From positions 218,205-282,204 of the forward strand of contig NIVC01000399.1 of NCBI GenBank assembly GCA_002269645.1: a stretch of 64,000 bases of DNA, in the 5' to 3' direction. The stretch comes from Macrostomum lignano. Lineage: Eukaryota. Positions within the stretch are counted from its first letter, which is position 1. The number at the start of each line of letters is the position of its first letter. This document shows positions 26,156 through 53,330 of the stretch, piece after piece. The notes beneath the pieces were generated by a model. It did not search any database. It saw only the letters and a program-made list of their open reading frames with translations, and had not been told where the DNA came from. The position numbers and the translations under genes were made by a program.

Positions 26156-26692
26156 TCAGTTGAAAGAGACAAACACGGTGCCGCCGGCTCCGCCTCCACC
26201 CACAGCGCCGTCGTCACCGCCACCGCCGCTGGCTCCGCCCGCTGCTCCGGTGCCGCCGCCGCCCTGCGGATTGGCGGCCCGTTCGTTGGCCGCCTCCAAT
26301 TTATTGGCCTCCCGATACTTCATCAGGTAGACTTTCAGCGGCTCAATGTAACTGTCTAGGCCGACAGCCTGCATCGCCGTCAGGATGTCCTCGCCGTTCA
26401 TTGTCTTCCGCTTCTCCTCCTGGCATCTGTCCGACGCTTCGGACGTGACAAAGGAGATAAACTCGGACACACACTCTTGCACGCACTCTTTCGCCTCTTT
26501 AGTGATTTTGCCAGTCTCCGGTATTGTTCGCTTCATAATCTTCGATATGTTGGCAATGGGCAGGAAGCGGTCCTGGTCCCGGATTGGCGAGCACCGGCCA
26601 ATCGGTCGGCCATCGTCCAGACTGCCTCCTCCGGCGTTGGCTGTCGCGCCTGGCGTTGCCCCAAACCCGGAGCCAGAGTGCTCGTCTGAGTC
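26156..26692 (-). CDS. NFYB: Nuclear transcription factor Y subunit B (histone fold); 5' exon unresolved
   Basis: [18 protein letters not shown]...[43 protein letters not shown]...[14 protein letters not shown]. Acceptor tttcag at 26693-26698; the open frame extends to an ATG at 26716. Confidence 0.95.
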
Positions 26693-29657: not shown

Positions 29658-32600
29658 ATGCAGCCAAAGCAACCAACAAGACCCAATGGGAGCCTTCAAT
29701 TGTCATCTGCTCAAGCTCAGCCAGCTAGATCATTTATGCCTATTGAAACTATGCCTAAAATTCAGCCAAGTCAAACATCAGCTAACCCTACAAGGCCTAT
29801 TTTTGCCTCTACACCTCCATTACAACTTCCTCATGGCTCTTTATTGCATCCAACACCTGTGAGGTCTATGTTGTCTAATCAGCCCAATCAGATGAACTTG
29901 CATGGTCTGAATTCCTCATCTGCACAAGCAGGTATGGCTGCACCTCCATTGCCTCTGCAAAGTCATTTGCCAAAAAGTTCAATGCCTTGTCCATCAACAT
30001 CTTCCTCAGTGTCAGCTCCACACCCTTCTCAGTTGAGACAACCACCTCAAGTTTCATCATTTGAAGTGCCTTCAACTCAGACAGCAGCTGCAAACTTGAC
30101 GTCTCAGGTACACCAGATGAGAATTGGTAGCTCAGCAACACCTGACCATCGATATGTAGGTCCACAGTCCTCAATGATGCCATCGAGCTCAGCAGCACCT
30201 GGCTATCAACCTATTGGACCTCTGCCACCTCCTATGATGCCATCGAGCTCAACGGCACCTGACTATCAACCTGTTGGATGTCCGCCACCTCCTATGATGC
30301 CATCGAGCTCAGCGGCACCTGGCTATCAACCTGTTGGATGTCCGCCACCTCCTATGATGCCATCGAGCTCAACGGCACCTAGCCATCAACCTGTTAGACC
30401 TCTGCCACCTTCTATGATGCCATCGAGCTCAGCGGCACCTGGCTATCAACCTGTTGGATGTCCGCCACCTCCTATGATGCCATCGAGCTCAACGGCACCT
30501 AGCCATCAACCTGTTAGACCTCTGCCACCTTCTATGATGCCATCGAGCTCAACGGCACCTGGCCATCAACCTGTTGGACCTCCGCCACCTGGCCATCAAC
30601 CTGTTGGACCTCCGCCACCTGGCCATCAACCTGTTGGACCTCCGCAACCTGGCCATCAACCTGTTGGACCTCCGCCACCTCCTATGATGCCATCGAGCTC
30701 AACGGCACCTGGCCATCGGCCTATTGGACCTCCAGAACCGCCGATGCATCCAATATCTGCAGCCGCACCTTCGCCCCCTTCATTTGTCCCCGCGCCGCCA
30801 GCACCAATGCCATTCGTAGCGCCGACGCCGCCGCTGCCCGTTGGACCGATGCCTCGACAAATGACTTCGCCGCCGACGCTTCAGCAGCCGCAGTGGTCGA
30901 CTGCAAGCGCTCAGCATCGCGAAAACTCAGTGAATCTTCTGCGCGACCGGCAGCTGCTGCGGACGCACGGCTCCGAGCCCATAGAGACGGTCGCTCCGCC
31001 GCCGTTGGGCCATTCGTTCCCGGCTGAGGCCAACTGCAATCCGGATGTCATGTCCTGCACAATGAACGCCGTGCCGGCCACTGCCGAGTTGTTGCGCCGA
31101 TCTCGCCTACCGTTAGGCCTGGCAATGCACCCGTTTAAGGATCTGCGCAGCCTGGCAGTCATTCAGGCCAACGTCATCGTTCGCTGCCGAGATTGCCGGG
31201 CCTATATTAATCCTTTCGTGCGCTTCTCCAGCCAACAGAGATGGCGCTGCAGTCTCTGCTTTCTTGACAACGATTTGCCAGAAGAGTTTCTTTATGATCC
31301 CATGTCCCAGGTAAGGCAGACTTTTACTTTCGCAGAAACCTTGTAAAAAAATAATACGCGCTTAAATGCTTTAAGATCAACGCTTTTATGCATATACGGT
31401 ATTTATATATAAATGTTCTATTGTACCTAGATCAAGTTCTGTCACTCGTTCTACACCAATCAGAGATCGGCGGGATGCCACATTATACATTTAGAATGGG
31501 TAGAAAACTAGCCTTTATCCCTTTATCTGTCCCTCGGGTCCTTTGAAACTTCACAATAGCAATCCGGCCCGCTCAATGTTTGTGCCTCTTCTCAGCTCTC
31601 TTCTCTCCCCTTACTCTTCTCTCGTCTCTCGTCTATATTTTATTCTCTCCTTGTACTCTCATCTGGCCCGCAGCCATGAGCTGAATTCTTTATCTGGCCC
31701 TTCAGGTAAAAAAAGTTTGCAGACCCCCAGCCCCTCTAGAGAATCACCTAGACCAGTACGAACTCATATTTTGGTCCCGAGTAGTTTTAAGACAACTGCT
31801 CCGCTGGAAACCTATTGCCCCCGCAGACCTACGGCGACCCGAGCCGTCGGCCAGAGATTCGCAACGGCACAGTGGAATTCATCGCCACCCAGGAGTATTC
31901 TGTTCGGCCGCCGCCGCCCGCAACCTACATCCTGGCGCTGGACGTGTCCCAGGTTCTGTCGTCAGACCCGGCCGTTGCCAAGTCGGCAACTGCCTACTTG
32001 ACTGCGGTTAGTCAGACTCTGCTTCGCTGTCTGGACCGTCTGCCAGGCGACACCCGCACCCAGCTGGCCGTCATCACCTTCAATGGCGTTCTGCACCTGT
32101 ACAAACTGGACGGACCCCGTCCCAGCCTGCTGGCCATGCCTGATCTGGACGGCGATTCGGACCTACCAATGCCCGAAGGTCTTCTAGTACCCGTGGCCGA
32201 ATGTCGCGACGCCATCGTTGAATTGTTGGAATCGCTGCCCGAATTGGAGTTCCCTGCGGTGCCCGGCTGCTGTCTGGGATCGGCTTTGGCCATAGCTCAC
32301 AGGTCTGTCTTAAAGATTGGCCTGTGTGTCTCTGGCTGCTTAGTCATTGTGTCTCTTGTAGATTGGCCTGTGTCTCTTGTAGCTTGATCATTGTGTCTCT
32401 TGTAGATTGGCTTGTGTCTCTTGTAGCTTGATCATTGTGTCTTTGTAGATTGGCTTGTGTCTCTGGTTGCTTGATCATTGTGTCTCTTGTAGATTGACTT
32501 GTGTCTCTGGTTGCTTGATCATTGTGTCTCTTGTAGATTGGCTTGTGTCTCTTGTAGCTCGATCATTGTGTCTCTTGTAGATTGGCTTGTGTCTCTTGTA

Positions 32601-35600
32601 GCTCGATCATTGTGTCTCTTGTAGATTGGCTTGTGTCTCTTGTAGCTCGATCATTGTGTCTCTTGTAGATTGGCTTGTGTCTCTTGTAGCTCGATCATTG
32701 TGTCTCTTGTAAATTGGCTTGTGTCTCTGGTTGCTTGATCATTGTGTCTCTTGTAGATTGGCTTGTGTCTCTTGTAGCTCGATCATTGTGTCTCTTGTAG
32801 ATTGGCTTGTGTCTCTTGTAGCTCGATCATTGTGTCTCTTGTAGATTGGCTTGTGTCTCTTGTAGATTGGCTTGTGTCTCTGGTTGCTTGATCATTGTGT
32901 CTCTTGTAGATTGGCTTGTGTCTCTGGTTGCTTGATCATTGTGTCTCTTGTAGATTGATCATTGTGTCTCTTGTAGATTGGCTTGTGTCTCTGGTTGCTT
33001 GGTCATTGTGTCTCTTGTAGATTGGCTTGTGTCTCTTGTAGCTCGATCATTGTGTCTCTTGTAGATTGGCTTGTGTCTCTTGTAGCTTGGTCATTGTGTC
33101 TCTTATAGATTGGCTTGTGTCTCTTGTAGCTTGATCATTGTGTCTCTTGTAGCTTGATCATTGTGTCTCTTGTAGATTGGCTTGTGTCTCTTGTAGCTCG
33201 ATCATTGTGTCTCTTGTAGATTGGCTTGTGTCTCTGGTTGCTTGATCATTGTGTCTCTTGTAGATTGATCATTGTGTCTCTTGTAGATTGGCTTGTGTCT
33301 CTGGTTGCTTGATCATTGTGTCTCTTGTAGATTGGCTTGTGTCTCTTGTAGCTCGATCATTGTGTCTCTTGTAGATTGGCTTGTGTCTCTTGTAGCTTGG
33401 TCATTGTGTCTCTTGTAGATTGGCTTGTGTCTCTTGTAGTTTGATCATTGTGTCTCTTGTAGATTGGCTTGTGTCTCTTGTAGCTCGATCATTGTGTCTC
33501 TTGTAGATTGGCTTGTGTCTCTTGTAGCTCGATCATTGTGTCTCTTGTAGATTGGCCTGTGTCTCTTGTAGACTGTCTTGTGTCTCTTGTGGACAGGTCA
33601 ATCTCTGTCAGTTTTTTACTTTTCGTCGCTATCATTCATCAATTGTGACAGTGATATTCGTTAACCACCTACTGCCAGTAATACACGGGTATTTAATCGG
33701 TCAATTTACTTGTATTCAGACTCGCCCAGTCCAGCGGCGGCCGTCTACTGTTGTTTCTGGCCTCCCGTCCGTCAGTCGGACCCGGCGCCTTGTCCGGTCC
33801 GGCCGGATCAGACTCGGACGACTTGGCTGGCCAGCCGGCCACTGACTATTACAAGCGCCTGGCGTTAGACTGTTGCAGCGCCCAGCTGTCTGTTGATCTG
33901 TTCTGCGTCGGGCCCGGTCACACTGACCTGGCCTCGGTCATGCCCATAGCCGTGTACTCCTCCGGCCGGGTGCACCGCTATCCGCGCCTGCCCGACGATG
34001 CGGACCGGCTGGCTGCGGATCTTGGCCGGCATCTCACTCGCAAGCTGGGATTAGAGGTCTCTGTTATAGCTTTGAGGAATTGCTTTGGAGGCCAAGAATC
34101 GCCCTGAACCATCCTATGAATCGCCCTGAACCATCCTATGAATTGCCCTGAACCACCCTAGGAATCGTTCCTGAATAACCCTCAGAATTGCCCCTAAACC
34201 CACCCTCAGAATCGTCCCTGAATAACCCTCCGAATCGCCCTGAATAACCCTCAGAATTGCCCCTGAACCACCCTCCAAATCGTCCCTGAATAACCCTCCG
34301 AATCGCCCCTGAATAACCCTCAGAATCGCCCCTGAACCACCCTCCGAATCGTCCCTGAATAACCCTCCGAATCGCCCCTGAACAACCCTCCGAATCGTCC
34401 CTGAATAACCCTCCGAATCGCCCCTGAACCCACCCTCCGAATCGTCTCTGAATAACCCTCAGAATTGCCCCTGAACCCACCCTCCGAATCGCCTTTGAAT
34501 AACCTTCCGAATCGCCCCTGAACCATCCCAAAGATTCGCCCCTGAATAACCCTCCGAATCGCCCCTGAACCATCCCAAAGATTCGCCCCTGAACCACCCT
34601 AGGAATCGCCCTGAACCACCCCAGAATCGCCCTAATTCTCCAGGCTGTGCTCCGGGTCCGCTGCTCAAACGGCTACAGCGTGGCCGCCTTCTACGGCTCC
34701 TGTTTCGTTCGCGCCACCGACTTGGCGGCGCTGCCCTGCGCTAGTCCGGACGCCGGATTCGCCATCCAGCTGGCTGTCGGCGATGGCGCCGGCACCGCGG
34801 GAGCCAGCGAGCCGGTGGTGTTCCAGGCCGCTCTGCTGTACACTGGGCGGAAGGGCGAGCGGAGGATCCGAGTGCACACGCTGGGACTGCCGGTTGCTAC
34901 CCGGATTGAGGATGTGTTCGCCGGGTCCGACCAGCGGGCGGTGAGATATTTTTAAGTTCAAAGCTGCTGTGATAGCGTGACTGCCGTTTTCAAGCAACTT
35001 GGATCATAAACAGCCATTCACCCAATCATAAACAGCCATTAACCAAATCGTAAACAGCCATTCACCAAATCATAAACAGCCATTAACCAAATCGTAAACA
35101 GCCATTCACCAAATGTAAACAGCCCATTCACCAAATCATAAACAGCCATTCACCAAATGTAAACAGCCCATTCACCAAATCATAAACAGCCCATTCACCA
35201 AATCATAAATAGCCATTCACCAAATGTAAACAGCCCATTCACCAAATCATAAACAGCCCATTCACCAAATCATAAACAGCCATTAACCAAATCGTTAACA
35301 GCCATTCACCAAATCATAAACAGCCCATTCACCAAATCGTTAACAGCCATTCACCAAATCATAAACAGCCCATTCACCAAATCATAAACAGCGCATTCAC
35401 CAAATCGTAACACAGCCCATTCACCAAATTTGTAAACAGCAATTCACCAAATCATAAACAGCCATTCACCAAATCCTTGACAGCCGATTCACCTAACCGA
35501 ATTATCAAAATCGAATCTTTTCATTAAAGATTATCGGCCTTCTGGCGCAAATCGGCGCCGAGCGCATCATAACCGGCGCCAACCGCCTGTCGGACGCTCG

Positions 35601-38600
35601 CGACGCGCTGGTGAACGCCGCAGCCGATCCGCTGGCCGCCTACGCTCGGGCCACCGGGCAGCGCGGCGCCGGTGGCCTCTGGTCGCCTCCCAACATTCGA
35701 CTGCTGCCGCTGCTGATCCTGGCGCTGCTCAAGTGGCCCGCATTCCGGCCCAGTGTCGGACAGCTGGACGAAAGAGCGGCTGCTTTGGCCGAGGTAAATT
35801 TTTTGTGGGGGGGGGCTGCGCCCGTAATCTGATTTTTTGTTGCAATCCTACGAATGAAACTTTTGCTGTACTTGAAGTAGCAACTTACCCAAAACCCACT
35901 AGTAACGCTCTCCTTAGCAACCGACCCAGTAGCAACGGTCTCTTAGCAACCAACTTAGTAGCAACTGTCTCTTAGGGGTCTACGACAATTTGACTTCCGA
36001 CAAAATGACTGCGGACAAAATGACTGCGGACAAAATGACTGCGGACAAAATGACTGCGGACAAAATGACTGCGGACAATTTGACTTCTGACAATTTGACT
36101 TCCGACAATTTGACTTCCGACAAAGTGACTGCGGACAATTTGACTTCCGACAATTTGACTTCCGACAAAATGACTGCGGACAAAATGACTGCCGACAATT
36201 TGACTGCCGACAATTTGACTGCCGACAATTTGACTTCCGACAAAATGACTGCCGACAATTTGACTGCCGACAATTTGACTGCCGACAATTTGACTTTCGA
36301 CAATTTGACTTCCGAAAATTTGACTTCCGACAATTTGACTTCCGACAAAATGACTGCGGACAAAATGACTGCCGACAAAATGACTGCGGACAAAATGACT
36401 GCCAAAAATGACTGCGGACAAAATGACTGCGGACAAAATGACTGCCGACAAAATGACTGCGGACAAAATGACTGCCAAAAATGACTGCGGACAAAATGAC
36501 TGCCAAAAATGACTGCGGACAAAATGACTGCCAAAAATGACTGCGGACAAAATGACTGCGGACAAAATGACTGCCAAAAAAACACTCCAGGCTCTGACCG
36601 TATTTATGCAAGGCTAGCAATGCTTTTTACATGAACAAAAATGCAAGCTACATTTGGCTTTCAACAATTCGTGCATGTATATCTACTAATGTTCAAACGG
36701 ATCCTCCACATGAAGCTGTGTTCCATGAATGCTCTTTATATAGCTATAGCCGCGCGCTAGCGTATCATTAACTTTAGCTTTGACTAGGCCTAATAAAGCT
36801 TTTCTGATAGGACGAGTATGTGACATTTTTTAAAAATCTGAAAGAATCAATAAGATTCAAGTATGAGATTAATATGACATGGGAGAAAAAAAACTCTATA
36901 AACAGCATTCATTAAACACAGCTACATGCAAAAGATCAGTTTGAACATTGGTAGCAATCCTGCGCCCCCTTCGGGGCGGCCAACAAGCAAGAGACGAAAA
37001 TTATTAATGTATATCCTATTTGTCTTGACATCTCAGCAATTCCCCGTTGTAAGACTTGACATCTTAGCAATTCCCCAGTAAGCCTCGAAATCGCAGCAAT
37101 TGCCGCCGTAAGCCTTAGCATCCCAAGATGTCAACATTTTTAAATGACGCTTCCTTTATATTTTAGATTACGTTTCTTCTATGTGTTACCTTACGCTGCT
37201 TTTATGTTTGATGAAGTTTCTTTTATGTTTTACTTGACGCCTTTTATGTTTGACATGACTTCGCTTCTCTTTTTTGACATGACGCTTCTAATTTTACTAG
37301 TAGATATACATGCACGAATTGTTGAAAGCCAAATGTAGCTTGCATTTTTGCTCATGTAAAAAGCATTGCTAGCCTTGCATAAATACGGTCAGAGCCTGGA
37401 GTGTTTTTTTGGCAGTCATTTTGTCGCCAGTCATTTTTGGCAGTCATTTTGTCGCCAGTCATTTTTGGCAGTCATTTTGTCGCCAGTCATTTTTGGCAGT
37501 CATTTTGTCGGCAGTCAAACTGCCGCAGTCATTTTGTCCGCAGTCATTTTGTCCGCAGTCATTTTGTCCGCAGTCATTTTGTCCGCAGTCATTTTGTCCG
37601 CAGTCATTTTGTCCGCAGTCATTTTGTCCGCAGTCATTTTGTCCGCAGTCATTTTGTCCGCAGTCATTTTGTCCGCAGTCATTTTGTCCGCAGTCATTTT
37701 GTCCGCAGTCATTTTGTCCGCAGTCATTTTGTCCGCAGTCATTTTGTCCGCAGTCATTTTGTCCGCAGTCATTTTGTCCGCAGTCATTTTGTCCGCAGTC
37801 ATTTTGTCCGCAGTCAAATTGCTCCGCAGTCATTTTGTCGGCAGTTAAATTGCTCCGCAGTCATTTTGTCGGCAGTCAAATTGTCGGCAGTCAAATTGCT
37901 CCGCAGTCATTTTGTCGGCAGTCAAATTGTCGGCAGTTAAATTGCTTCGCAGTCATTTTGTCGGCAGTCAAATTGTCGGCAGTCAAATTGCTCCGCAGTC
38001 ATTTTGTCGGCAGTCAAATTGTCGGCAGTCAAATTGCTCCGCAGTCATTTTGTCGGCAGTCAAATTGCTCCGCAGTCATTTTGTCGGCAGTCAAATTGTC
38101 GGCAGTCAAATTGCTCCGCAGTCATTTTGTCGGCAGTCAAATTGTCGGCAGTCAAATTGCTCCGCAGTCATTTTGTCGGCAGTCAAATTGCTCCGCAGTC
38201 ATTTTGTCGGCAGTCAAATTGCTCCGCAGTCATTTTGTCGGCAGTCAAATTGCCGCAGTCATTTTGTCGGCAGTCAAATTGCCGCAGTCATTTTGTCGGC
38301 AGTCAAATTGTCGGCAGTCAAATTGCTCCGCAGTCATTTTGTCCGCAGTCATTTTGTGGCAGTCAATTGTCGTGGACCCGTCTCTTAGCAACCAAACTAG
38401 TAGTAATGGTCTCTTAGCAACCATCTCTTAGCAACCAACATACTAGCAACCATCTCTTAGCAACCAAACCAGTAGCAACAGTTTCTTAGCAACCAAACCA
38501 GTAGCAACGGTCTCATAGCAACCAAACCTTTAGAAAACAACCATTAGCAGCCATCTCCTTAGGAAACAACCCGTTTGCAACCGTCTCTTAGCAACCAACA

Positions 38601-39139: not shown

Positions 39140-39735
39140 TTGTCACATAGCAACCGGGATTCCCGTTAGCTACAGTAAATCCCAGTCACATAGCAACAGG
39201 GATTCCCCTTAGCTACAGTAAACCCCAGTCACATAGCAACAGGGATTCCCCTTAGCTACAGTAAACCCAGTCACATAGCAACAGGGATTCCCCTTTAGCT
39301 ACAGTAAACCCCAGTCACATAGAATAGCAACAGGGATTCCCTTTAGCTACAGTAAACACCACTAGTCACATAGCAACCGGGATTCCCCTTTAGCTACAGT
39401 AAACCCCAGTCACATAGCAACAGGGATTCCCCTTTAGCTACAGTAAACCCCAGTCACATAGCAACAGGGATTCCCCTTTAGCTACAGTAAATCCTAGTCA
39501 CATAGCAACCGGGATTCCCCTTTAGCTACAGTAAACTCCAGTCACATAGCAACAGGGATTCCCCTTTAGCTACAGTAAATCCCAGTCACATAGAAACTGG
39601 GATTCCCTTTAGCTACAGTAAATCTCAGTCAAACAGCAACCGGGATTCCCCTTAGCTACAGTAAATACCACCAGTCGCATAGCAACAGGGATTTCCCTTT
39701 ATCCATAGTAAATCCCAGTCGCATACAACCAGGAT
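39140..39735. repeat. ~42-bp minisatellite (cagtcacatagcaacagggattcccctttagctacagtaaacc) just 3' of the Sec24 stop
   Basis: About 14 units. Confidence 0.9.
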
Positions 39736-40489
39736 TTCTTAGATTTCAACGCTAAGTAAAACAAGCTATGTAACACAGGTACTCAAAATCGTTGGCCTGA
39801 CAACCTTCAAGATAAAAAACAACTGTTTAAAGTACACTATTCATTATTTGACTCACAAAAAAGTGAAATCCTCCACTTTTAGCATAGCTACTACTACTAA
39901 AGTATCGGTTTTTGCATTTCTCTCACCTGGATAGAAGCTTCCCTAATTCTTTGATTGTATAGTTACAACTTGGTTTTCTCTACGCCTATTTTGATTTTTT
40001 GCTGATGGAGCAAGTTTTTTTTTCCAGAAAAAATATCTTCCATAAATATTAGATAGCGGTGGGTTTGGTAATCACGTTAAACTCTTTCTTATTGCATGCC
40101 AGTCTTAAATTTCATGAATTGCCTAGCTTCTTTCCCAAGCGATTTATTGTACATAAATTCATTACTTATCTAGATAAAGTTGTTAATAGAACTGACAATT
40201 ATCAATATAGTGCAATATTTAGCTTCGTAAGTCTACTTCTAACACGATTAAAGCATAAACTCGGTGTAGGTTTTGGGAATTATTCATTTTTGAGAAGTAA
40301 AATTCCGCTAGCTTTGTCAGCTCTTGAGTTAGTACTCAATTGCCCCGTGGGGGGGAGCTTCGGTATTATAAATCTTCTGCGAATCAAAAAACGACTTGTA
40401 CATGTTTTTCATCGCTTTGTAAAACATTACTGTGATTTGAAGGCCATAATCACACTTAAGCCTTGCTCTGATAGGCAGAAGAGCAACCG

Positions 40490-40739
40490 ACAGTTCAGCC
40501 GCAGCTAATGCGCGGCGCATCTGAAGGCTGCGTACGGCTGTTCAGTCCAAGTACTGGGGGGTCGCCACACACCCTCAATTACCCCAGCTAATGCTGGCAC
40601 CCATTTTACAGCTGGGTGAACTGAAGCAATGCAGAGTTAAGTGTCTTGCTCAAGGACACAAATTGTTCCGAGTGGGTCAAGAATCGAACCCCCGACCTAT
40701 CAGTCGTGAGTCCGCCGCTCTAACCACTAGGCTACATCC
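40490..40739 (-). mobile_element. tRNA-derived CORE-SINE, copy 2
   Basis: Minus strand GGATGTAGCCTAGTGGTTAGAGCGGCGGACTCACGAC...GGTTCGATTC gives A and B boxes, followed by the CORE domain. Confidence 0.85.
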
Positions 40740-41062
40740 TTCCCGCTACAAGCCCTCTACGACCTGCGTGTAGTATGAGTACACGTAGTATGACTAAAAC
40801 GAATGTCTTGCCAAGATTGTGGAAGTTCCACCTTGTTAAAACTGTACGGGACAGTTAAAGTTTATTTTGCACAGGTAAAGCAGGCTTAATTGTATCGCTG
40901 GCCTGTTCGCTACAGAGCTAGCAATGTTCGGTTTTTTACCTCTGTACAGTTTGAGAGCAACTTAGAGTGGAAAGCATAATAAACTGTTTTTAGCACAACA
41001 ATATGAGGCTGCTCAGGCCGTTGCAGCTGAGACTTCTGTAGTAAATCTGTGTTTCCAACAGC

Positions 41063-43128
41063 ATGGTGGCTATTCTGGCTGTTTTTACTCTGCTGCTAGT
41101 CCAGCTGCCCGCAGCAGTGCGGTGCAAGCTGACTCAAAATTCACTAGCCGAACTCCATGGCCTGGAGACGAATATTTCGATTGCCTGGCGGGACAATGAT
41201 CGAGTCATGTTTGAGTCGGGCGTTAACACTGCTCTGTTGGCGGAGATACCCGACGCCATCGTTAGCATCACCTCCAGCGCCACAGAGGCCTTGGTAGAGA
41301 TCTTTGAAAAAGATCCGAAGAAAGCCACCAACCCTAACGTACCTACCGATCCGAGGAAAATATCGAGGCTGAAGCGAATATCGGCTATGAAAATTCTCAC
41401 CCCAATCTTCGCCATTCTCTCTGTGGTGGCCGACGTTCTTAGCATGACTGTATTCGCCGAGAATAACCAATTCGAAGATATATACACCTACTTGCAGGAT
41501 CAGTTTATTAAGGTACAATTTGTATGATAAAGACCCGATTTTTAGAACATAATTTAGTAGTATATTTGACTAGACATCAAAGCCCCCCGCTGGGGAGGCA
41601 AAAATAAGGAATTTCCCTTTCATTCTTAGCATCTGTCGGTAGCAAAAGCCATCGATCGGTCTACACTCCCTTACTTTTTGGCCCACTTAGATAAAGTTTT
41701 ATTAGCTCGTAGATTTCATTCTGCCTTTGAATTTTTATATAATTTGTCCCTGACTTTCAGGTAAACGCCAAGATTGAAGCAAACTTCCACGCAATCAAAG
41801 AGTTGGAGAGTATTGTGCTGTGCGGCCAGGTATCAAAGAATTTAAGGTCGCGACAGACTCTCGTCAAAGCCTTTTACAACAGGTATAAGCAGATGCTGGA
41901 ACGAGCCAAGACTGACCGAGGCGAGGCTATGGCCCTCTTTGACACTGAACTGCGTGAGTTTTTCTTAAGTGTGAAATCAACTGCGCCATTATATCGTACG
42001 AGTATCTTTAGTCACTCGGTTTTTCAGCTCAGTACCAGAGCTCGCTTGTCCTGCTGGAGCTGCAACAGATGCTCATTGACAAGTCTGTGTACGCCCAGCT
42101 GCTCACCTACTGCGCTCGCGGCGACCTGATGCAGTACCTGGCTATGATGGTGGAGCTGCATCACACATTCAAACAGGCGATCATGTTGGACGCAGCAGCC
42201 AAAATTCGCCTGTTCAATTTGACCAAGGATGTTCTGGAGTCCGACAGAGGCTTCTGGAGAAATCAGTCGGCATTGGTAAGATTGCTTAAGTATTTCTATT
42301 GATTCCGTGACTTAGAAGCGAAGTGTACCAATGCATGTTCGCGCAATACTTGATGTATCACTGAACGAGTATCTACATGTATTCCAGGTTGTCGACCTAA
42401 TGACGGAAGTTGGATTAGACTTGGCCATTAGTAGCTGGCACAGTTTCTACGTGAAAGACGTAGACAAGTCGCTGAGCAAGACGGTTTCCTTTTCCGGACA
42501 GCAGGCAGCCAACGACCTGAACTCCGCCTTGGTCACCAAGTACTTTTACGTTCGTACTGCTGTGATCGTAGTGCCGCACGACAGCCAGTCCATCGACGTC
42601 ACGGATGCGTTCGGCCAGGACATGCAAACCGTGAGCGCGGACAGCTTCGTTTGCTACAGGAGACACCGAGCGTTCGGCGAGACGGTCATTGTGCTGTGCC
42701 GCAACGTGTTCGTCTACCCGGACGAGCAGGCGGACCTCGACAGCGCATACGCCACCTACACCAGAGGCGTCCTCTCGCTCAGCCTCGTTGATGCGCTGCG
42801 GAACGACCGCTGGGACGACATTGGTAGCGTGATGAAAACCTACCAGGTGTCGTTCTTCGCCGTGAGAGTTGTTGTGTACCTGAACAGCGGCGAAGTGGCA
42901 ACTGCGCAGTCGAGTGCAGCGTCGGATCTGGCGTTCTTCCAGTCCGAGGGGACCGCCTTTCAGGCCCTGGTCACCGCCAAGCTGGTCGGAGGCTCGCCTT
43001 CTTCTGTCAACAAAGTTGTGCCGCCAGCCAAGGTGTCCCCCTCTTCAGGAGGTGCTGCCCTCTCGTGTCAGTGGTCTGCGATTGCGGCTGCGATCTTGAC
43101 CAGCATCGCGATGAAGAATGCGTGCTGA
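41063..43128 (+). CDS. Uncharacterised secreted, probably GPI-anchored protein, paralogue 1 (543 aa)
   Basis: Exons 41063-41512, 41761-41953, 42028-42275, 42388-43128, GT-AG, phases 0/1/0. Signal-peptide-like start MVAILAVFTLLLVQLPAAVRC; hydrophobic C-terminal tail; NxS/T sites. Confidence 0.88.
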
Positions 43129-44002
43129 TGTTCAGAGTATGAACAAATTCGAGTAGTTATTGAGCAGTATGCGTGAAGATTACAGTTGTATTTCTCCTAC
43201 TGATTCATTTTAGGGTACGGGCTTTATTCGTGTGCATGTATTTTTTTCGGCGGAAACTTTCTGAACAGACTTTCTTAAATTTTATTTTATGTTGTTATTT
43301 TTACGCTACATAGGCTCGTATTTTTAGAGGCTTTAAATTTACGGGGTGGCCATTTTGGTCTTTTTAGTAATGACTACGGCCTAAATACTGAATGTACTCG
43401 TTTAAAAACGTTTACGCTGTTTTTTTTGTTTTTGTCTTTGCAAGGTTTACAAAGATCTCGAAGCATAAGGATTTGGTCACCCCTTGGTAACTCTTAGAAA
43501 GCGACGTGTTGTGCGAAAAAAACATGCCCATAAAGTTGATGAGTGACCATTAGAAGAAGCTACTTCATAAATTTCGATGCAGTAATAGAACCTATTGCCT
43601 CATTAGCATGCCCTTTTATTGTACATTACAGCGCTGTTGGCGCTCGCTTCTTTCCACCGCGTGGAGGATTGAGTTTCAGCAAAGAATCGTGTCTTTTTGT
43701 GTTACCAACGGCCCTCCACCCGATTCTTCCATTTGTTTCGTCTGAGTACCTACAAAAATTTTTTTTTACTCGCACTGTCCTCTAAAGTCTACGGTACGCA
43801 GGTCCAGACCCTTAGGAGTGGAAGTTCCACTTTTTTGTGCACATCAGAGCGTCACAGATTCGACCGAGCTTATTGTTCAATATGAGCTTGACTAGCTTAG
43901 GGCGCTCATCTTTGCAGAAGATTATAAATATGCGAAGTGAAGGTGTTTACAGTCAACGCAGAACCACTGATAAATTTCTATAGTAGAATCGCATGTCCCA
44001 CC

Positions 44003-45873
44003 ATGTCTATAGCGGCTTTCATCCTGTTCCTACTTGTCTCTCGGCTGCCCGCCACCTCGAGTCAGCTGGTTACACCAACCCCGAGCCCTCTGGCCCGCCT
44101 GACAGCCCTGGAGACCAGCATCTCCGTCTCCTGGCGAGACAACGATCGGGTCACCTTCCAGACTGACGTTGACGCCGCCATGACTAAAGAAATACCGCAG
44201 TTGGTGCTTGGCATCACCGCCAGTGTTTTTGCGGCCACCGCCTCCGTACTGTCCTTGTTTCCGCCTTTATTGATCCTGTCCGCCGTGTTCACCATTCTTT
44301 CTGTTGTAGCCGACATCCTTGGCCAGATTTTGTTTCCTGAAGAGGATCAGTTCGCTGAGCTCTACGACTACCTCCAAGAGGAATTTAGCAAGGTATTGCA
44401 TTGCTTTCAGTATTATGATGGTGGCTCCTTGCAATGCACAGTTTACATGCAGCTAAGGGGGTTGCCAAGGTTAACCGAGGTTAAACCAAGCATATAGAAA
44501 CTTTCTCAATCTTCAACTCACAGGTAAATGCCATGATTGAGTCGAACTTCCACGCCATAAAGGAACTGCAGAGCATCGTACTCTGCGGCCAGGAGTCCAG
44601 CGAGCTGAAGTCTCGCCAAAACGTAGTCCGCGCCTTCTTTGCCCGATACACTGAGATGCTTAGGCGAGCCAAGACTGACCGAGGCCAGGCACTAGCTATC
44701 TTTGACACTGAGCTGCGTGAGTATCAAATATTGCGACATCTACCTTTCTTACACCTGTTGAGGCATTGTTGTATTTTTCATTCTATAGCCCAGTACCAGA
44801 GCTCGAGAATCCTGTTGGAGCTGCGGCAGATGCTCACTGAGAAGACTCTGTATTCCAAACTGCTCACCTACTGCGCTCAGGGAGACTACTCTAAGTACCT
44901 GAAGATGATGTTTGAGTTGCACCACACATTCAATCAGGCAATCTTTCTGGACACAGCAGCCAAGCTTCGTCTGTTCAATCTGACCAAAGAGGTCCTGTCG
45001 TCTGACCGGGAATACTGGAGGAATCAGTCGTCTCTAGTAAGATATTCTGGACATGTTATGAAAAGTTGATGTTCTCATTGCTAATCCAAAAATAATCACC
45101 TTAATTATCATTTAGCTAGATGAAACATTCTGCTTCAGGTGGTAAATCTGATGACGGAAGTCGGAAACGAGCTGGTCAGGAACACCTGGCACAGTTTCTA
45201 CGTGAAAGACGTGGACAAGTCGCTGAGCAAGACGGTTTCCTTTTCCGGACAGCAGGCAGCCAACGACCTGAACTCCGCCTTGGTCACCAAGTACTTTTAC
45301 GTTCGTACTGCTGTGATCGTAGTGCCGCACGACAGCCAGTCCATCGACGTCACGGATGCGTTCGGCCAGGACATGCAAACCGTGAGCGCGGACAGCTTCG
45401 TTTGCTACAGGAGACACCGAGCGTTCGGCGAGACGGTCATTGTGCTGTGCCGCAACGTGTTCGTCTACCCGGACGAGCAGGCGGACCTCGACAGCGCATA
45501 CGCCACCTACACCAGAGGCGTCCTCTCGCTCAGCCTCGTTGATGCGCTGCGGAACGACCGCTGGGACGACATTGGTAGCGTGATGAAAACCTACCAGGTG
45601 TCGTTCTTCGCCGTGAGAGTTGTTGTGTACCTGAACAGCGGCGAAGTGGCAACTGCGCAGTCGAGTGCAGCGTCGGATCTGGCGTTCTTCCAGTCCGAGG
45701 GGACCGCCTTTCAGGCCCTGGTCACCGCCAAGCTGGTGCGCGGCTCACCGTCGGCTGTCAACAAAGTTGTGCCGCCAGCCAAAGTGAAGGCCAATGGTGC
45801 AGCCATCGCCGGTCTGTGGCCTGCGGCTCCAGCTTTAACCCTGGCTAGCATCCTGATTATGAAATTCTACTGA
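44003..45873 (+). CDS. Uncharacterised secreted, probably GPI-anchored protein, paralogue 2 (521 aa)
   Basis: Exons 44003-44392, 44524-44716, 44789-45036, 45139-45873. Internal exon sizes (193, 248 bp) identical to paralogues 1 and 3. Confidence 0.88.
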
Positions 45874-46540
45874 ATTCATTAACTTGCATAGTTCGCGACT
45901 CCAAAGTAGCCTACAATATTCTTTTTGATCTAATCTAGGTAGCTAACCCTTGAGAAATAAAGAAATATTCGCCTTCTGTTTTTTTCGCTGCTTTTTTTCT
46001 TTTCGAATTCAAATAATCTCATTATAATAAAAAAGGGTAAAAAGCTTTCTAATAAACGCCGTTATTAACAATTCAGAAATATACTGGTAGCTATATAATT
46101 AAGCTAGCTCGTAAGAGTTGGACGATGCTTTCTAAAACAGCTCGTGCCCTCGTATTTTAATTTTTCCTACATTTAAACAAACTGTAATGCAAACAGCAAA
46201 AGCGAAGTTCTCTTTTTTAATACAACCGCTTTGGTTACGAGTAAACAGCTTGTGTTCGTGGAGAAAGACTAGCAAATTTGCTGTACTTGATGTGCAATGC
46301 GACAGGTAGCCAGGTGCTAAAATATAGAGTGAAGTTCCACTTCTATTGTCATTGACCAACTGCGCTGCACTCTAAGATGTATGAGCGCATACGACAAGCT
46401 AATATAAATAGAGCTGGCAGTGATCTGTTTACGCGGCATGACAACAGCGCCAATAGTTCTAGATTCTGTGGTTCTCAGTTCGACTGCATTACAGACTGCC
46501 ATTCAGTTTTAAGTTAAGCCTTAAAAGATACAATTGGCAA

Positions 46541-48925
46541 ATGCTTTTCAAAGCGGCGCCCGTTCTGATCTTGCTGTTTTTGGCCCAGCTGCCGAGCAGC
46601 TCGCAGAACAGTCTGGATCGGCTGTCGGATCTGGAGACGGGAATTTCAACTTCATGGCGGAACAACGATCGTCAGACTTTTCAAGCCAATGTCAGCAGCG
46701 CAATGGAAAGAGAAATTCCAAAGCTTCTACTTGAGGTGACGTCATCTGTGAGCTCGATACTGGCAGATGCGTTCGCTCGAATGCCTGGCAAGCTGAAGCT
46801 TCTGTCACATGTGTTTACCATCAGTTCCGTAGTGACTGACGTTTTAGGAAAGATTCTTTTCAACGAGGCTGACCAATTCGCTGAATTGTACTCTTACCTG
46901 GAGAAGAGATTTATTGAGGTAAGTCACCACTATACATAAGTTCATTAGTTCTTTGGTTTTTAAGTTTCATTTCACTTAATACGTACCGAGCGTGCATCAG
47001 CCAACAAGGCTCTTACACTGTTTTGTACGAGCGTAACTTTAAATGGGCTGATGCGCTTTATACGTGATGCACTTAATGCAATTTCAATACAACTAAGACA
47101 ATTTGGATCACGGGGGTATTGCTGAGATGTCCGCCAAAGCTCACGGGGGGATTACTGAGATTTCAAAGCTTACGGGGGTTGCTCAGCTGCTTTGAGCCAA
47201 AGCTTATAGGGAGTGCTGATATCTGTGGCTAGATAGCTAGCTGGCTTTCAGGGTGGATGGTTTTCTGTTTGAAGCATTATTTTCCTTAAGCCTGACGGGC
47301 GCACATATTGCTTGTCTGTCTACTATAAGTAGAGTAAAACTATTCAAAGCTGAGTTTGCGTTGATATTTCTTACAACGAACTTTATTCAGAGCGACACCC
47401 TGTTTCAATTTTCAATTTCAGTTGAACGCTATGATTGAAGCGAATTTCCACGCCATCAAAGACTTAGAGAGTGTTGTGCAGTGCGGCCAGGTCTCTAGAG
47501 AGTTGATGTCGCGTCAGACTCTTGTCAGAGGTTTCTTTAGCAGGTACAAGGAGATGCTGGAGCGAGCTAAGACTGGTCGAGAGGAAGCATTGAAGATTTT
47601 TGACACTGAGCTGCGTGAGTTTAATCGCATTTGTGTCGCAACCTTTTACTGACAAAAATTAGTGGTCACAAGAAATGCAGCTGATGTCAATCGACATCTT
47701 TTTCAGCTCAGCTCCAGAGCTCGCGAGTTCTACTAGAGCTGCAGCAGATGCTCACTGACAAAACCGTGTTCGCAAAGCTGCTCACCTACTGCGCTCGCGG
47801 CGACCTGATCCTGTACCTGAAGATGATGGTGGAGCTGCACCACACTTTCCAGCAGGCGATCATTTTGGACACGGCCGCCAAAATTCGACTCTTCGGTCTG
47901 ACTAAGGAGAAGTTGACAACGGACAGGCAGGCATGGAGGGAAAAGTCGATGCTGGTGAGATGACAATTTGGTTTTCTTTCTGACTGTACAAACTTACCAA
48001 CTAACTAATGATGATTAGTTATTAGAGCACACGTAATCCACCAGGGCAGGGTACTTTCGCGCCAGTACATGTATCAAACCGTTGGTCTAGTCTGCCCCAG
48101 TGCCCAGTGTAGTTGGCTTTGATTTTTATACGGAGACATATAATTAACTTGTATACCCTACTCTAACCAATCCAGGTGGTTAGCCGAATGGCGGATGTCG
48201 GCAACGACCTGGTAATGAAGAGCTGGTATAACTTCTACAGAGCCGATATTGAAAAGTCGATTGGAACCTCGGCTAACCAGCGGCCTTCGGATGCTGCTGG
48301 CCTGCTAAACTCCGTCCTTAATCAAAAGTACATCTACGTTCGTACTGCGGTGATCATCGTGCCGTACGACAGCAAGTCCATCGACATCACGGATGCGTTT
48401 GGCCACGACATGCGAATCGTGAGCGCGGACAGCTTCGTCTGTCACAGGAGTCGCCGGGCGTCCGGCGAGACGGTCATCGTGCTGTGCCGCAACGTGTTCG
48501 TCTACCCGAAGGAGCAGGCGGACCTCGACAGCGCCTACGCCACCTACACCAGAGGCGTCCTCTCGCTCAGCCTCGTTGATGCGCTGCGGAACGACCGCTG
48601 GGACGACATTGGTAGCGTGATGAACACCTACCAGGTGTCGTTCTTCGCCGTGAGAGTTGTTGTGTACCTGAACAGCGGCAGCTCAGTAGCCACTGCGCAG
48701 TCGAAAATGGCATCAAATCTGGCGTTCTTCCAGTCTGAAGGGACCGGCTTCCAGGCTTTGGTCACCGCCAAGCTGGCTGCTCGCGGTGGCGGTAGTAGTG
48801 TTGTGCCACCAACCAAAGTGAAGTCAGCTGAATCGACTGTCGCGGCTTGTTGGCCAGTTTTGGTAGCTTTGGCTTCGTTAATTATCATCAAAGTGAAGTT
48901 GATCAACGGCGATGCTGCTATGTAA
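46541..48925 (+). CDS. Uncharacterised secreted, probably GPI-anchored protein, paralogue 3 (522 aa)
   Basis: Exons 46541-46918, 47422-47614, 47707-47954, 48176-48925. Same exon structure and motifs (LET.IS..WR.NDR, NFHAIK, LLTYCA.GD, ELHHTF.QAI). Confidence 0.88.
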
Positions 48926-49640
48926 CTGTCGGAATGTTGCTGATTGGTGGAACCCGAGCTATCCGGATATTTAGAAATTGTTTTGAGACTGTAAAACTGA
49001 AAACAAAAACTAAAATGAGGTAGATCTGTAAAGCTAAGAGCATATGTAGCTAAATTTATTATATTTTTATCAATATTATCACATCACTAGATAGAACCTA
49101 GAAGCTAAATTTGTATTACTGAAGTTTCCAGAAAAGTTATAGTACTCGTAGAATTTTTTGCGAACTAAAATAAAATAAAATAAAAAACGTCTGTTTTCTC
49201 TGCACTTGTGACTTGTTGTGACTTTTGACTTGCGAAATCTTGTTCATTTTCCTGTGCTTCCATCACATGCAGCATTTGGTTACAAAAGCACTTTCGAGCA
49301 CAAGTGAACTACCTTATCAAAGCAGCGTATTTGTTATGATGACAGTCAGGAAAAATTTAGCAACATAGAAAATTTGCGTAATTTCGTATATTTTTCTGTC
49401 CCAAAACAAAACTTTGAAACACACGAGAGCAATTGGTTTGCAATACGTTAGTAACTCGTTAAGGCTTTAGAAATCATAATTGTTCTCTTGCTGCTGGAAT
49501 GTTGAAGTCACAGAGTAGTCAATAGCAGCTATTTAAAATGTAGGTTAATTTTGCAGCTTGTCAGAAACAACTTGTGCGAGGCAGGCCAGAATTGTCGCTG
49601 ATAAATTACACGGCTGTCAAAATCTAAATTTATTTTCTTC

Positions 49641-52025
49641 TCAATCGTCGTCCTCGCCGCCCTCCTCGTCGCCGTAGCCCTCCTCCTCGCCCTCCTCGGC
49701 CTGGGCCAGCAGCGCTTTGAGGGCTGCCTCCTCCTCGGGCGTCGGGTCATCGGTCTCTTTGAGCTCCGGGTCGCTGACAAACTCCGCCATGACTGGCGGC
49801 GGCGGGGCCGGGCTGTAGTTCTCGGAGGTGAACTTGTGGCCCCAGCCGATATAGATGTTCTCGCACACTCTGTGGTACAGAGGAGGCGTTCAGTAGCTAG
49901 TGTAAGCATCTGTTTCTACTACTAAAAGTTTTGTGTGTGGCAAGTACATGTCTATCTAAGAACAGAATGAAGCGGTCTAATGTGAGTCCTAGTAGGACTC
50001 ACTACATGTACCAGTTTGTCGCAAACATGATGTCATCCAGTAACTCTGAGTGAGTAATTTACTTTCTTTGAATTTGAACCAGCTCTGAATCTGCGACTGT
50101 CAAGGCATTTGCATCTATGTGTATGCAAAACGAATGTTCTGCCTTGTGCAATAAATAACTCGACGCCCGCCGTTGCTTACTTGCCACTCGCCACAGCGTG
50201 CGCTCCTGGCCACAGGTTGGACGACACGACGGTTACAGCGAAGCGCTGCACCAGGCCACTGGACAGGCGCACAGTCCACGGCTGCATGCCGTCAATTGGC
50301 GCGTCCTCGGACAGTGACGTCAGCAGCGGCGGCCCAACCTCAGGCTGGGGCTGGGGCTGCTCCTCTTTTTCCTCTTCTTCGTCCTCGAGCTCCTCGTCCT
50401 CGTCAATTTGGACGGGGTTCCACCACCGGGTGCGGCCCTGCGGCAGGATGTGCAGCACGTGGTGGGCCCAGGCCTCAGGGTCCGCCAGGGCGCGCACAGG
50501 CGGCGGCTCGTACTCGGGATTCTCCGCGCACGACTCATGCCCGACGCCGTCCTCCTCCTCTTCTTCCTCTTCGCCGAACGTGTAGAAATCCTTCGGCGAG
50601 ACGTGCGTCCCGGCTGAGATGCGCGCAATCTGGGCGCGCAGGTAGTTTGCCTCGGTGCCGGGGAACGGCGGGTAAGTCACGATCGGCGCGTCCAGCCGGC
50701 CAGTGAAGAACTTCTTGATTCGCCGGGCCACGTGAATCTGGGCTGGCGTGGCGTTCGGCAGGCGGATCCAGGCCTTTCCGGGCTCGTTGCACACGAAGTA
50801 AGCGTACTTGTTAGCGCCAGTTCCGGGCTCCTCTTTTGGTACCGGCGGAGCCGGCTTAAAGTTCGGCTTGGGAGTGTCATCCTCCGTCTCCTCTTCTTCG
50901 CCCTCCTCGTCGTCCTTGTCGTCGCGCTCCGGCTCGGCCTCCTCTTCGGCCTCTTCTTCGCCTTCGCCTTCGCGGAATTCAACCTCGGCAACGTAGTAGT
51001 TCTGCTCAGTGCCCAGCACTTTGCCCCAGAAGCGCAGCTTCTCGATCGGCTTCTCGTCTACCAGCTTCTTGAGCGACAGCCAGATGCGGTAGATCTCGTC
51101 CTTGTCGATGCCTGCAATGGAGGAGAATTTTATGGAAAATAGACGTGAATTATAGAATCAGGGAATATCTCGGAGTGATTTTATACCACCTGCTCTCTGT
51201 CTAAGATCGGCGAAAAGTGGCTGACGTCTCGTAAAATTCCTGGGTTGCTACTCGTATAATCTTACTTGTGCGATTAACGCTCATAAGGCCTGATGTTAAG
51301 AAGGAACTACAGGGCAGGTGCAAACAACTGTGGGAGTTCGGTACCTAATTGCTGCCTCAGTGAGTGCAGGTTGGCTGTCGCAAGGAGTTGCGGAGGTCAT
51401 CTATTGCCCACAACAAAACAACAAGACTTCCCATTTGCGGTGTTCATTTATTGGTAAAGACCTGACATAACGTAATTAAAGGCATCTCTACTCACCTACG
51501 CCGCCCTGCTCAAAGAAGAAGGCGAGCTGCAGAAGATTGGGCAGCCTCGGATCAGCGTCGTCCTCGCCCATCGCTTCGTCATCGTCGCCGTCGGGCCTCT
51601 AGAATAAATTAGAACTATTCTAGTCAGTTAAAACAGTCCAACAAGTCCTGACTGACAAGTAACAATGTACAGCCAAGCCAAGCGCTTACGTTAAACAGTC
51701 GCTTCTGAATTTCGGCCAGAGCGATCTCAGTGCTGCGGTCGAGCTTTCCGCGTAGGGAGTCGCCATCGCCGGCGAGACGCGATCGCTTGCACTCCTTGCT
51801 GATGTCCTCGAAGATGTCGACAACGTCCCGTGGACGTTCTTCGAGAATCTTACGCAGGCAGGTGACCAGGTGCTCGTAGAGGTTGATGCCAGTTGAGTTG
51901 GTGGTTGAGAGCAGGTACGTCTTATCGGTGAGGAAGTTCTGCTCCTTTGTGGTCGGCTCCTGGGCTCCATCTGGCACTGGAGTCTGTGGCTGAGATGACT
52001 TGCGGCTCTGAGTGTCCGACATCAT
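49641..52025 (-). CDS. RSPH4A: Radial spoke head protein 4/6 homologue (532 aa)
   Basis: Exons 51690-52025, 51496-51598, 50181-51111, 49641-49869, GT-AG with consistent phases. [84 protein letters not shown]4A and RSPH6A cannot be distinguished. Confidence 0.95.
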
Positions 52026-53330
52026 GCAAATAATCAATAGTAAATAAGATTAACATAATTGCCCAGTTAGTATTTTCTATAAAATGAAATTAAATAGCTG
52101 GTTATTAACCAAGCAATGAACCAAGAGGTAGCAGCCACATCTTGGAATCGACTTGATTGTAAGATAAAGCCATGGAAAATATGGATCAGTATCAGCAGCT
52201 CCTTACGAATAAATATTGCTTTTATAGATAGCCGTTATAATAAATTTTCTAATTGCTAAATTCACTAAAATATTACAATAATCTAGTCAGCTCACATGAG
52301 GGGAAGTGACAATTGAATTCCTGTTACAGAAAAAGTATATTCTCTTGCATAAACTAGGCATTAAAAATGGCCAATGATAAGTGTCATTTTAATTGGAACT
52401 AAGCATGGAAACAAGATTGCCTTCCCTTTTTGAATGTATGGATCGAAAGGACCAAAGCAACATTCTTTCAATAAAAATTGACGGAATAAGTCTTACGCAG
52501 CTTTTTATTGAGTCTTAGTTTGAGTCCTATTTTCAGTAGCTTTTTTGAACACAATTTTTTAACTAATAAGAAATTAAACAAAAGCAAAAAATCCCAAGTT
52601 AGAAATTCAGAACCTGAAAATTGCACCAAAAGGAATAGACCATTCAAGTTATGATAAACAGTATAACTGTATCACGAAATTGACATGTTTTTCTAATGTA
52701 TTAGAAATGTGCTGCCAACTGCAAAATTGTGTTATTAAAGAAATAAATTAAAAAAGACAGTAAAACTTTTCAACAATTCTGCGTTTATATAACTCCAAAA
52801 ACTTATTCTATTAAGAAGTATAAAAATTAAGCCAAAATTTATTGCATAGCAGGTAAATAAAAACTAAATAATAATTGGCGCACTGCCACTTTAGAATATT
52901 CTGTTCTGTAGTATTGAATAAATGCGTACAAATCTAAATAACTTTGGGCTTGTTTTCTATGCCACATTCTCAAATAATGACAGAATTATTTTCAAAAATT
53001 ATTCCTAAATATCCTGAATATTTATAAATAACAGGCTTACTCCCGTGGGATTAGGTGGAGATCTCACTATTAGTTTTAGCTCACTGGAAAGCGCAGCTCC
53101 ATGAATAATGTAAAATTTGCCAATTAAACTTTTGATTGCTTACATAGAAACGGTCTTTAAAGCAGTGAACTTAAAATTCTTATGAAAAGAAATATTTTGT
53201 AGATGAAAGTTTCTTGTTTTTGCATAAAATTACAATTTTACTTTTTAAGCTTTTCAAAATTTGCTATAATCAGTAACGCGAAAAATTTAAATAACTGTTT
53301 TTGGGCCTTTTCATATTGCTTGCTCTGGTT

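Follow-up and report, generated by a model that had tools for sequence, protein, structure and literature searches.

A tandem trio of paralogous genes for putative membrane-tethered secretory proteins in the flatworm Macrostomum lignano

A stretch of 64,000 nucleotides from Macrostomum lignano (GenBank assembly GCA_002269645.1, contig NIVC01000399.1, positions 218,205 to 282,204 of the forward strand; hereafter the window, with positions counted from its first letter) contains three adjacent genes, designated g1, g2 and g3. An initial annotation of this DNA, made from the sequence, had described them as three intact four-exon paralogues encoding secreted, probably glycosylphosphatidylinositol (GPI)-anchored proteins of about 520-540 amino acid residues (aa) that belong to no named family. 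When the models were spliced, the four-exon structure with internal exons of 193 and 248 bp was recovered in all three genes, and the sizes of the products (Table 1) agreed with the expected range. The introns are of the GT-AG type throughout, and each spliced frame, which spans three introns, is open over 1566-1632 nt. A tblastn search with the g1-g3 proteins, by which the copy number was checked, found three copies in the window and no more. Intron 1 is 503 bp long in g3 as against 248 bp in g1 and 131 bp in g2; within this intron of g3 (46919-47421) a degenerate unit of about 30 bp is repeated three to four times, …CACGGGGG(T/G)ATTGCTGAGAT…AAAGCT….

A search of 5.8 billion proteins returned a single match, a sequence of 496 aa (P0001) with 58% identity over 93% of g2, and a search of the same 5.8 billion proteins with the family profile found nothing beyond this single-protein result. 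When P0001 was compared by phmmer with 1.84 billion cluster representatives, only P0001 itself and one further protein (P0002) were retrieved, and degenerate patterns run against metagenome contigs and against prokaryote genomes, each species being represented by one genome, revealed no relative. The initial annotation had spoken of a lineage-expanded family, and a restriction by lineage held in the protein, metagenome and prokaryote genome searches, in which only P0001, P0003 (529 aa, the full-length member of the same cluster as P0001) and P0002 were found. Within the collections searched, members of the family occur in Macrostomum-like flatworms only.

P0002 is UniRef100_A0A1I8HNU5 from M. 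lignano, which bears the UniProt name 'NIT domain-containing protein'. It is a truncated model of g1 with 264 aa, near-identical to the first 264 residues of g1. Compared with 41063-42275 of the window, it has D in place of N at residue 90, and around the junction of exons 2 and 3 it reads ...GEAMASLTLNCYQSS over a short stretch where the window has ...GEAMALFDTELPQYQSS, a difference that fits a 1-bp change near the end of exon 2, offset by the use of an acceptor 5 nt downstream (intron end ...cagCTCAG). The NIT domain (PF08376) was matched neither by g1-g3 at E values up to 1 nor by P0001 at E values up to 10. The UniProt name looks like the product of an automatic borderline profile match. 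Both the NIT domain and the present family are predicted to be all-helical. The public annotation of the family is incomplete, and the name 'NIT domain' is doubtful.

P0001 and P0003 were derived from Logan assemblies of sequencing runs. The contig that carries P0001 (L001, from run SRR28338164) is 2405 nt long and consists of an 85-nt leader, an uninterrupted frame of 529 codons and a trailer of about 730 nt; the homologue of 529 aa that it encodes retains the signal peptide, the internal helix, the four cysteines and the hydrophobic tail described below. This intron-less contig with its untranslated regions, although from another sample, is colinear with the g1-g3 proteins over all three exon junctions without a gap. 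It thus behaves as a spliced mRNA and backs the splice model.

The ratio of nonsynonymous to synonymous divergence (dN/dS; Nei-Gojobori method, four sequences) was 0.11-0.62 in every exon and pair with usable dS, and no exon taken as a whole gave a sign of positive selection. As all usable exon pairs gave values below 1, the reading frames are under purifying selection. The paralogues have nevertheless diverged very unevenly along their length. Strong divergence is confined to the first 110 residues or so; the products of exon 1 are 36-53% identical, and dS is saturated there; between g1 and g2, dS is 0.14 in exon 4 versus 0.7 to saturated in exons 1-3, and between g3 and either g1 or g2 it is 0.42 in exon 4. 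Within exon 4, g1 and g2 share a tract of 552 bp with one mismatch, including 524 identical bp. In g3, a stretch of 217 bp has 93-100% identity to both g1 and g2 in each window of 30 alignment columns, with identical runs of 89, 54, 30 and 23 bp, and is an older or shorter conversion tract. On either side of the tracts the identity falls to 40-60%, the tail-coding ends and the introns included. Such near-identical tracts amid diverged flanks indicate that gene conversion has homogenised the core of the C-terminal domain. The initial annotation had called the family diversifying, a description which we do not retain in view of the dN/dS values wherever they could be used and of the conversion of the C-terminal domain.

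These observations also bear on the reality of the genes, because the models might in principle be artefacts arising from chance open frames, pseudogenes or a duplication introduced by the assembly. The only public protein model is truncated and departs briefly from g1 at an exon junction, and the 524 identical bp stand in two genes 2.7 kb apart; both points speak for an artefact. However, three complete open frames that each run over three canonical introns, dN/dS far under 1 and the existence elsewhere of a colinear, transcript-like homologue argue against this explanation, as does the strong divergence outside the identical tract. Since the introns and flanks around the tract are diverged, gene conversion fits and an assembly duplication does not. 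We consider an artefact scarcely credible: g1-g3 are real, intact genes and tandem paralogues.

The upstream regions of g1-g3 show no general alignment with one another. The exact 10-mer GAAGTTCCAC occurs three times in the window, once upstream of each gene, and together with flanking sequence makes up the palindrome GTGGAA-G-TTCCAC, which is complete at g1 and g2 and shorter by one G at g3 (Table 1). A TATAAA sequence was found on the plus strand of 40500-49600 at two places only, in boxes upstream of g2 and g3. A palindrome common to the three genes suggests a binding site for a dimeric factor and points to co-regulation, so that g1-g3 may be switched on together. Between the preceding gene and the element of g1, a stretch at 40600-40745, which ends in ...GGTCAAGAATCGAACCCCCGACC...CTCTAACCACTAGGCTACATCC, looks tRNA-derived on the minus strand, like a short interspersed element; nothing was called there by ARAGORN or Rfam, and the two programs gave nothing over the window.

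To describe the proteins, we aligned five sequences, namely g1, g2, g3 and the orthologues P0001 and P0003. The alignment has four invariant cysteines (C151, C223, C366 and C381 in g2 numbering) and about 190 other invariant columns; the cysteine motifs pointed out in the initial annotation, VLCGQ, TYCA, FVC and VLCRN, with the variants VQCGQ, THCA and FIC respectively of the first three, are thus conserved at their cysteine columns. The signal-peptide-like start that it had proposed is likewise supported by inspection and by hydropathy. The N-termini are hydrophobic (19-residue Kyte-Doolittle mean of 1.7-2.4 at residues 1-23), and at the close of the hydrophobic region (Q/R)LP is conserved and positions -3/-1 are occupied by small residues, in P0003 as well. 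The N-terminus is followed by a strongly conserved helix, L..LE..IS..WR.NDR..F, then by a variable stretch, and about 90-130 residues from the start there is a conserved hydrophobic helix (LSPVFTILSVVTDILGVTLF in the orthologue, for example), one residue of which is an invariant Asp. As only g2 has a second hydrophobic helix ahead of this one, the hydrophobic hairpin of the initial annotation is present in g2 and is not a feature of the family, the conserved part being a single, moderately hydrophobic helix. In g1, a basic segment (…PNVPTDPRKISRLKRIS…, 41330-41385, residues ~90-107) that is absent in g2, g3 and the orthologue directly precedes the conserved helix, and its RLKR agrees as a sequence pattern with R-x-K/R-R of proprotein convertases; cleavage at this site, if made, would leave the hydrophobic helix of g1 near a new N-terminus. 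NxS/T sites are present, as had been stated, but they are few (three in g1, two in g2 and one in g3); the two sites at N258 and N273 of g2 are kept in four of the five sequences (g1, g2 and the orthologue) and not in g3.

The C-terminal tail is preceded by a linker, VVPP[AT]KV, and consists of small residues, a spacer of about eight residues with an invariant Trp and a hydrophobic end of 12-16 residues (Kyte-Doolittle 2.0-2.9). The C-terminus quoted in the initial annotation as typical of a GPI signal is the end of g2, KANGAAIAGLWPAAPALTLASILIMKFY. The layout fits such a signal in g1, g2 and P0001/P0003, where the hydrophobic stretch is followed by 1-4 residues (four of the five sequences). 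In g3, it is followed by 11 residues, partly charged, so that the claim does not extend equally to g3, the tail of which could just as well span the membrane as an anchor and leave a short end in the cytoplasm.

The structure of P0001 was predicted with AlphaFold2, both from the single sequence (mean predicted local distance difference test score, pLDDT, of 37.8) and with the 12 exon translations as rows of the alignment (mean pLDDT of 50.6 and predicted template modelling score, pTM, of 0.38). The secondary structure was alike in both runs, with long helices up to about residue 305, a mixed alpha/beta part of about 150 residues and a terminal hydrophobic helix; as the model is poor, the domain layout given here is taken from this secondary structure. 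When the low-confidence model was compared with PDB and BFVD using Foldseek, nothing was found at E < 0.09. Searches of a local copy of Pfam (g1-g3 and P0001), of NCBIfam (all five sequences) and of the PDB sequences (single protein and profile) yielded no credible family. The matches to GtrA, TsaD, DUF2430, PatB and a coronavirus S2' fragment (E 0.12) were rejected as hydrophobic or chance matches. The absence of a named family noted in the initial annotation is therefore upheld in these collections, with two caveats, namely the UniProt 'NIT' label and a precomputed 'weak' Pfam match of P0001 to PF27742 (CTXL_M), which could not be confirmed. We take CTXL_M to denote perhaps the middle domain of cephalotoxin-like proteins, which is our guess; papers on cephalopods shorten cephalotoxin to CTX. 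SE-cephalotoxin, with 1052 aa, has about double the length of the g1-g3 products (PMC3748352).

On balance we think it moderately probable that g1-g3 encode lineage-restricted glycoproteins of the secretory pathway, which would be tethered on the outer face of the membrane by a GPI-type signal, in g3 possibly by a transmembrane end. The segment from the internal helix to the tail holds the invariant cysteines and the two NxS/T sites kept in four of the five sequences, which argues for its lumenal or extracellular position. According to the topology that we propose, the N-terminal signal peptide would bring the chain into the endoplasmic reticulum, where the four cysteines might form two disulfides, C151-C223 (g2 numbering) in the helical part and C366-C381 in the C-terminal alpha/beta domain. 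A GPI anchor would then replace the short C-terminal hydrophobic peptide, although in g3 this peptide may stay as a transmembrane anchor. The mature form is predicted to have an ectodomain of about 300 aa, elongated and largely helical, and below it a compact domain of about 170 aa, which the short Pro-containing linker would join to the membrane. The fast-diverging first 110 residues or so would accordingly be placed distal to the membrane and the domain homogenised by conversion proximal to it. As to the role, we would guess at cell-surface interaction or a protective coat, and not at a free toxin.

Several points weigh against this interpretation. The transcript-like contig comes from another sample, the anchoring is deduced from sequence rules of thumb, the 11 residues past the hydrophobic stretch of g3 are unusual for a GPI signal, the low pLDDT and pTM make for a poor structural model, the weak match to PF27742 with its toxin-like name is left unexplained, and the internal helix of g1 and g2, with Kyte-Doolittle values of 2.0-2.4, would be taken as transmembrane by simple methods. 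The last point leads to a different arrangement, in which the products are integral membrane proteins with both the internal helix and the C-terminal stretch spanning the membrane and with residues ~115-490 in the cytosol. The 19-residue means of the helix in g1 and g2, and those of the tails of g2 and g3 (1.8-2.3), agree with two spans. However, the helix of g3 remains below the threshold of 1.6, the helix contains the invariant Asp, and the 12-16 hydrophobic residues of the tail are short for a membrane span; furthermore, the four invariant cysteines and the conserved NxS/T sites would be in the cytosol, where they have no obvious role. We therefore regard a two-span arrangement as quite improbable.

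The other alternative, which is unlikely but deserves more consideration, is that the products are secreted alpha-helical membrane-inserting proteins, similar to pore-forming toxins, for defence or prey capture. In such proteins, the conserved helix would be buried in a soluble bundle and then insert into the target membrane, the C-terminal domain would bind the target, and the hydrophobic C-terminal peptide would serve either as a pro-piece that is later removed or to tether the protein for a time in the cell that makes it. The overall layout, with a signal peptide, a helical part of about 300 aa, the hydrophobic helix at ~90-130, a C-terminal domain with cysteines and a length of 450-540 aa, parallels that of the jellyfish toxins CfTX, CaTX, CrTX and CqTX (PMC6024933, PMC8214413), which likewise have some 300 N-terminal residues that are mainly helical, a conserved hydrophobic helix ~90-150 residues from the start with a similar residue pattern and an acidic stretch after it, and a Cys pair in the C-terminal part. 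The weak match to PF27742, although unconfirmed and with a name whose meaning we guessed, points in the same direction; the jellyfish toxins, however, do not carry PF27742. We also compared the conserved helix with 30 sites of 'TSR1' (MEME motif 2 of PMC8214413), to which it was nearer than composition-preserving shuffles of the core (2000 core-only shuffles, P 0.0005-0.01), although this test was made post hoc on a hydrophobic segment and requires an insertion of 3-4 residues; the helix scored 38-44, as against 16-32 for the signal peptides and tails of the same proteins, and the best hidden Markov model and hhalign alignments always fell on the region of this helix. For the profile comparison we used toxin profiles of six and of 14 members, with sequences taken from the supplementary material of PMC8214413. 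The similarity was not significant: with six toxins hhalign gave P 0.035 at a probability of 1.5%, and with the broader set of 14 the signal became weaker (P 0.11, 0.5%). HMMER gave about 0 bits in both directions; homology to the jellyfish toxins was accordingly rejected, which leaves a resemblance at the level of the motif. Moreover, the membrane-anchor-like C-terminal tail, which the jellyfish toxins do not have, is conserved in all five sequences and is not a feature of a free toxin. No match to Endotoxin_N, to models of the ClyA/Hbl/XaxA type (three-domain Cry and ClyA-type toxins) or to another toxin model was found in Pfam, NCBIfam and the PDB sequences, and the low-confidence model gave no structural match. 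With respect to the filter used for jellyfish toxins in PMC8214413 (a signal peptide and 0-1 transmembrane segments), the present proteins have a signal-like start, and simple hydropathy adds one to three hydrophobic segments, the number varying between paralogues. The jellyfish toxins have been described as cnidarian-specific (PMC8214413). A bolder combination, to which we give little credence, is that these bilaterian, membrane-tethered proteins are related to, or a convergent copy of, the alpha-helical membrane-inserting toxins of cnidarians or cephalopods (jellyfish-toxin-like or cephalotoxin-like), in which case pore-forming modules would be displayed by GPI on the animal's own cells and the helix with the invariant Asp would be the inserting element.

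For the tethered surface glycoproteins that we favour, the closest analogy in the order of parts may be the variant surface glycoproteins of trypanosomes, which form a GPI-anchored coat and whose ectodomain is long and helical. They also have a signal peptide, an elongated helical N-terminal domain that is the most variable part, a smaller C-terminal domain with cysteines and a GPI-type tail, and gene conversion occurs among their clustered copies. In contrast, the present cluster has only three copies, with purifying selection throughout, and the flatworm is free-living and shows no evidence of switching antigens. No sequence similarity was found to any coat family of this kind in Pfam.

Table 1. 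Positions of the g1-g3 genes and of associated features in the window
Feature	Position	Strand	Remarks
g1	41063-43128	+	exons 41063-41512, 41761-41953, 42028-42275, 42388-43128; 450/193/248/741 bp; 543 aa
g2	44003-45873	+	exons 44003-44392, 44524-44716, 44789-45036, 45139-45873; 390/193/248/735 bp; 521 aa
g3	46541-48925	+	exons 46541-46918, 47422-47614, 47707-47954, 48176-48925; 378/193/248/750 bp; 522 aa
Conversion tract, g1 exon 4	42435-42986	+	partner g2 45186-45737
Conversion tract, g2 exon 4	45186-45737	+	partner g1 42435-42986
Older or shorter conversion tract, g3 exon 4	48463-48679	+	similar to g1 and g2
Palindromic element, g1	40819-40831	+	GTGGAAGTTCCAC; 241 bp upstream of ATG
Palindromic element, g2	43818-43830	+	GTGGAAGTTCCAC; 182 bp upstream of ATG
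Palindromic element, g3	46329-46340	+	GTGAAGTTCCAC, one G shorter; 210 bp upstream of ATG
TATAAATA box, g2	43923-43930	+	80 bp upstream of ATG, 102 bp downstream of palindrome
TATAAATA box, g3	46403-46410	+	138 bp upstream of ATG, 72 bp downstream of palindrome
Conserved hydrophobic helix, g1	41390-41455	+	aa 110-131, KILTPIFAILSVVADVLSMTVF
Conserved hydrophobic helix, g2	44270-44335	+	aa 90-111, LILSAVFTILSVVADILGQILF; second hydrophobic helix ahead
Conserved helix, g3	46796-46861	+	aa 86-107, KLLSHVFTISSVVTDVLGKILF; 19-residue Kyte-Doolittle mean <1.6
C-terminal tail, g1	43048-43125	+	…SPSSGGAALSCQWSAIAAAILTSIAMKNAC; layout GPI-signal-like
C-terminal tail, g2	45793-45870	+	…KANGAAIAGLWPAAPALTLASILIMKFY; layout GPI-signal-like
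C-terminal tail, g3	48833-48922	+	…KSAESTVAACWPVLVALASLIIIKVKLINGDAAM; putative GPI signal or transmembrane anchor

The initial annotation had placed the cluster between the genes for Sec24 and a radial spoke head protein, and both neighbours were verified: the Sec23/Sec24 zinc finger, trunk and beta-sandwich domains are encoded at 29658-34955 on the plus strand, and the radial spoke head gene is at 50177-52037 on the minus strand. A 60/30-bp tandem repeat at 30174-30733, in the first open frame of the Sec24-type gene, encodes a Pro-/Gly-rich repeat before the zinc finger. Upstream of this gene, an open frame at 26156-26716 on the minus strand has a histone-fold CBF/NF-Y domain (PF00808, E 1.6e-26) and is of a housekeeping type. 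The interval from the Sec24-type gene to g1 is filled with minisatellites. Two 15-bp arrays, at 35983-36575 (CGACAAAATGACTGC, 40 copies) and 37411-38365 (GGCAGTCATTTTGTC, 63 copies), are reverse complements of each other and form an inverted pair about 800 bp apart, which is why every reading frame there contains long spurious open frames. Other minisatellites in and after the Sec24-type gene, some of them in apparent introns, are at 32314-33590 (44 bp, 29 copies), 34096-34632 (23 bp, 23 copies), 35003-35493 (22 bp, 22 copies) and 39142-39736 (44 bp, 13.5 copies).

Work on regeneration, stem cells, bioadhesion and sexual selection makes use of Macrostomum lignano as a laboratory model, and the trio is a useful addition to its gene catalogue, in which the public annotation has one truncated and misleadingly named model of the family. 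If the toxin-like leads were true, this type of helical membrane-inserting protein would reach beyond cnidarians and cephalopods, which is unlikely on the present evidence. The family consists of ordinary taxonomically restricted, tandemly duplicated genes for probable surface proteins; new here are the purifying selection, the gene conversion in exon 4 and the palindromic element at the three genes. The cluster is a clean, small case of mosaic evolution, in which the N-termini have diverged past synonymous saturation while the C-terminal domain is kept identical by conversion, and the family is a candidate for a lineage-specific surface function.

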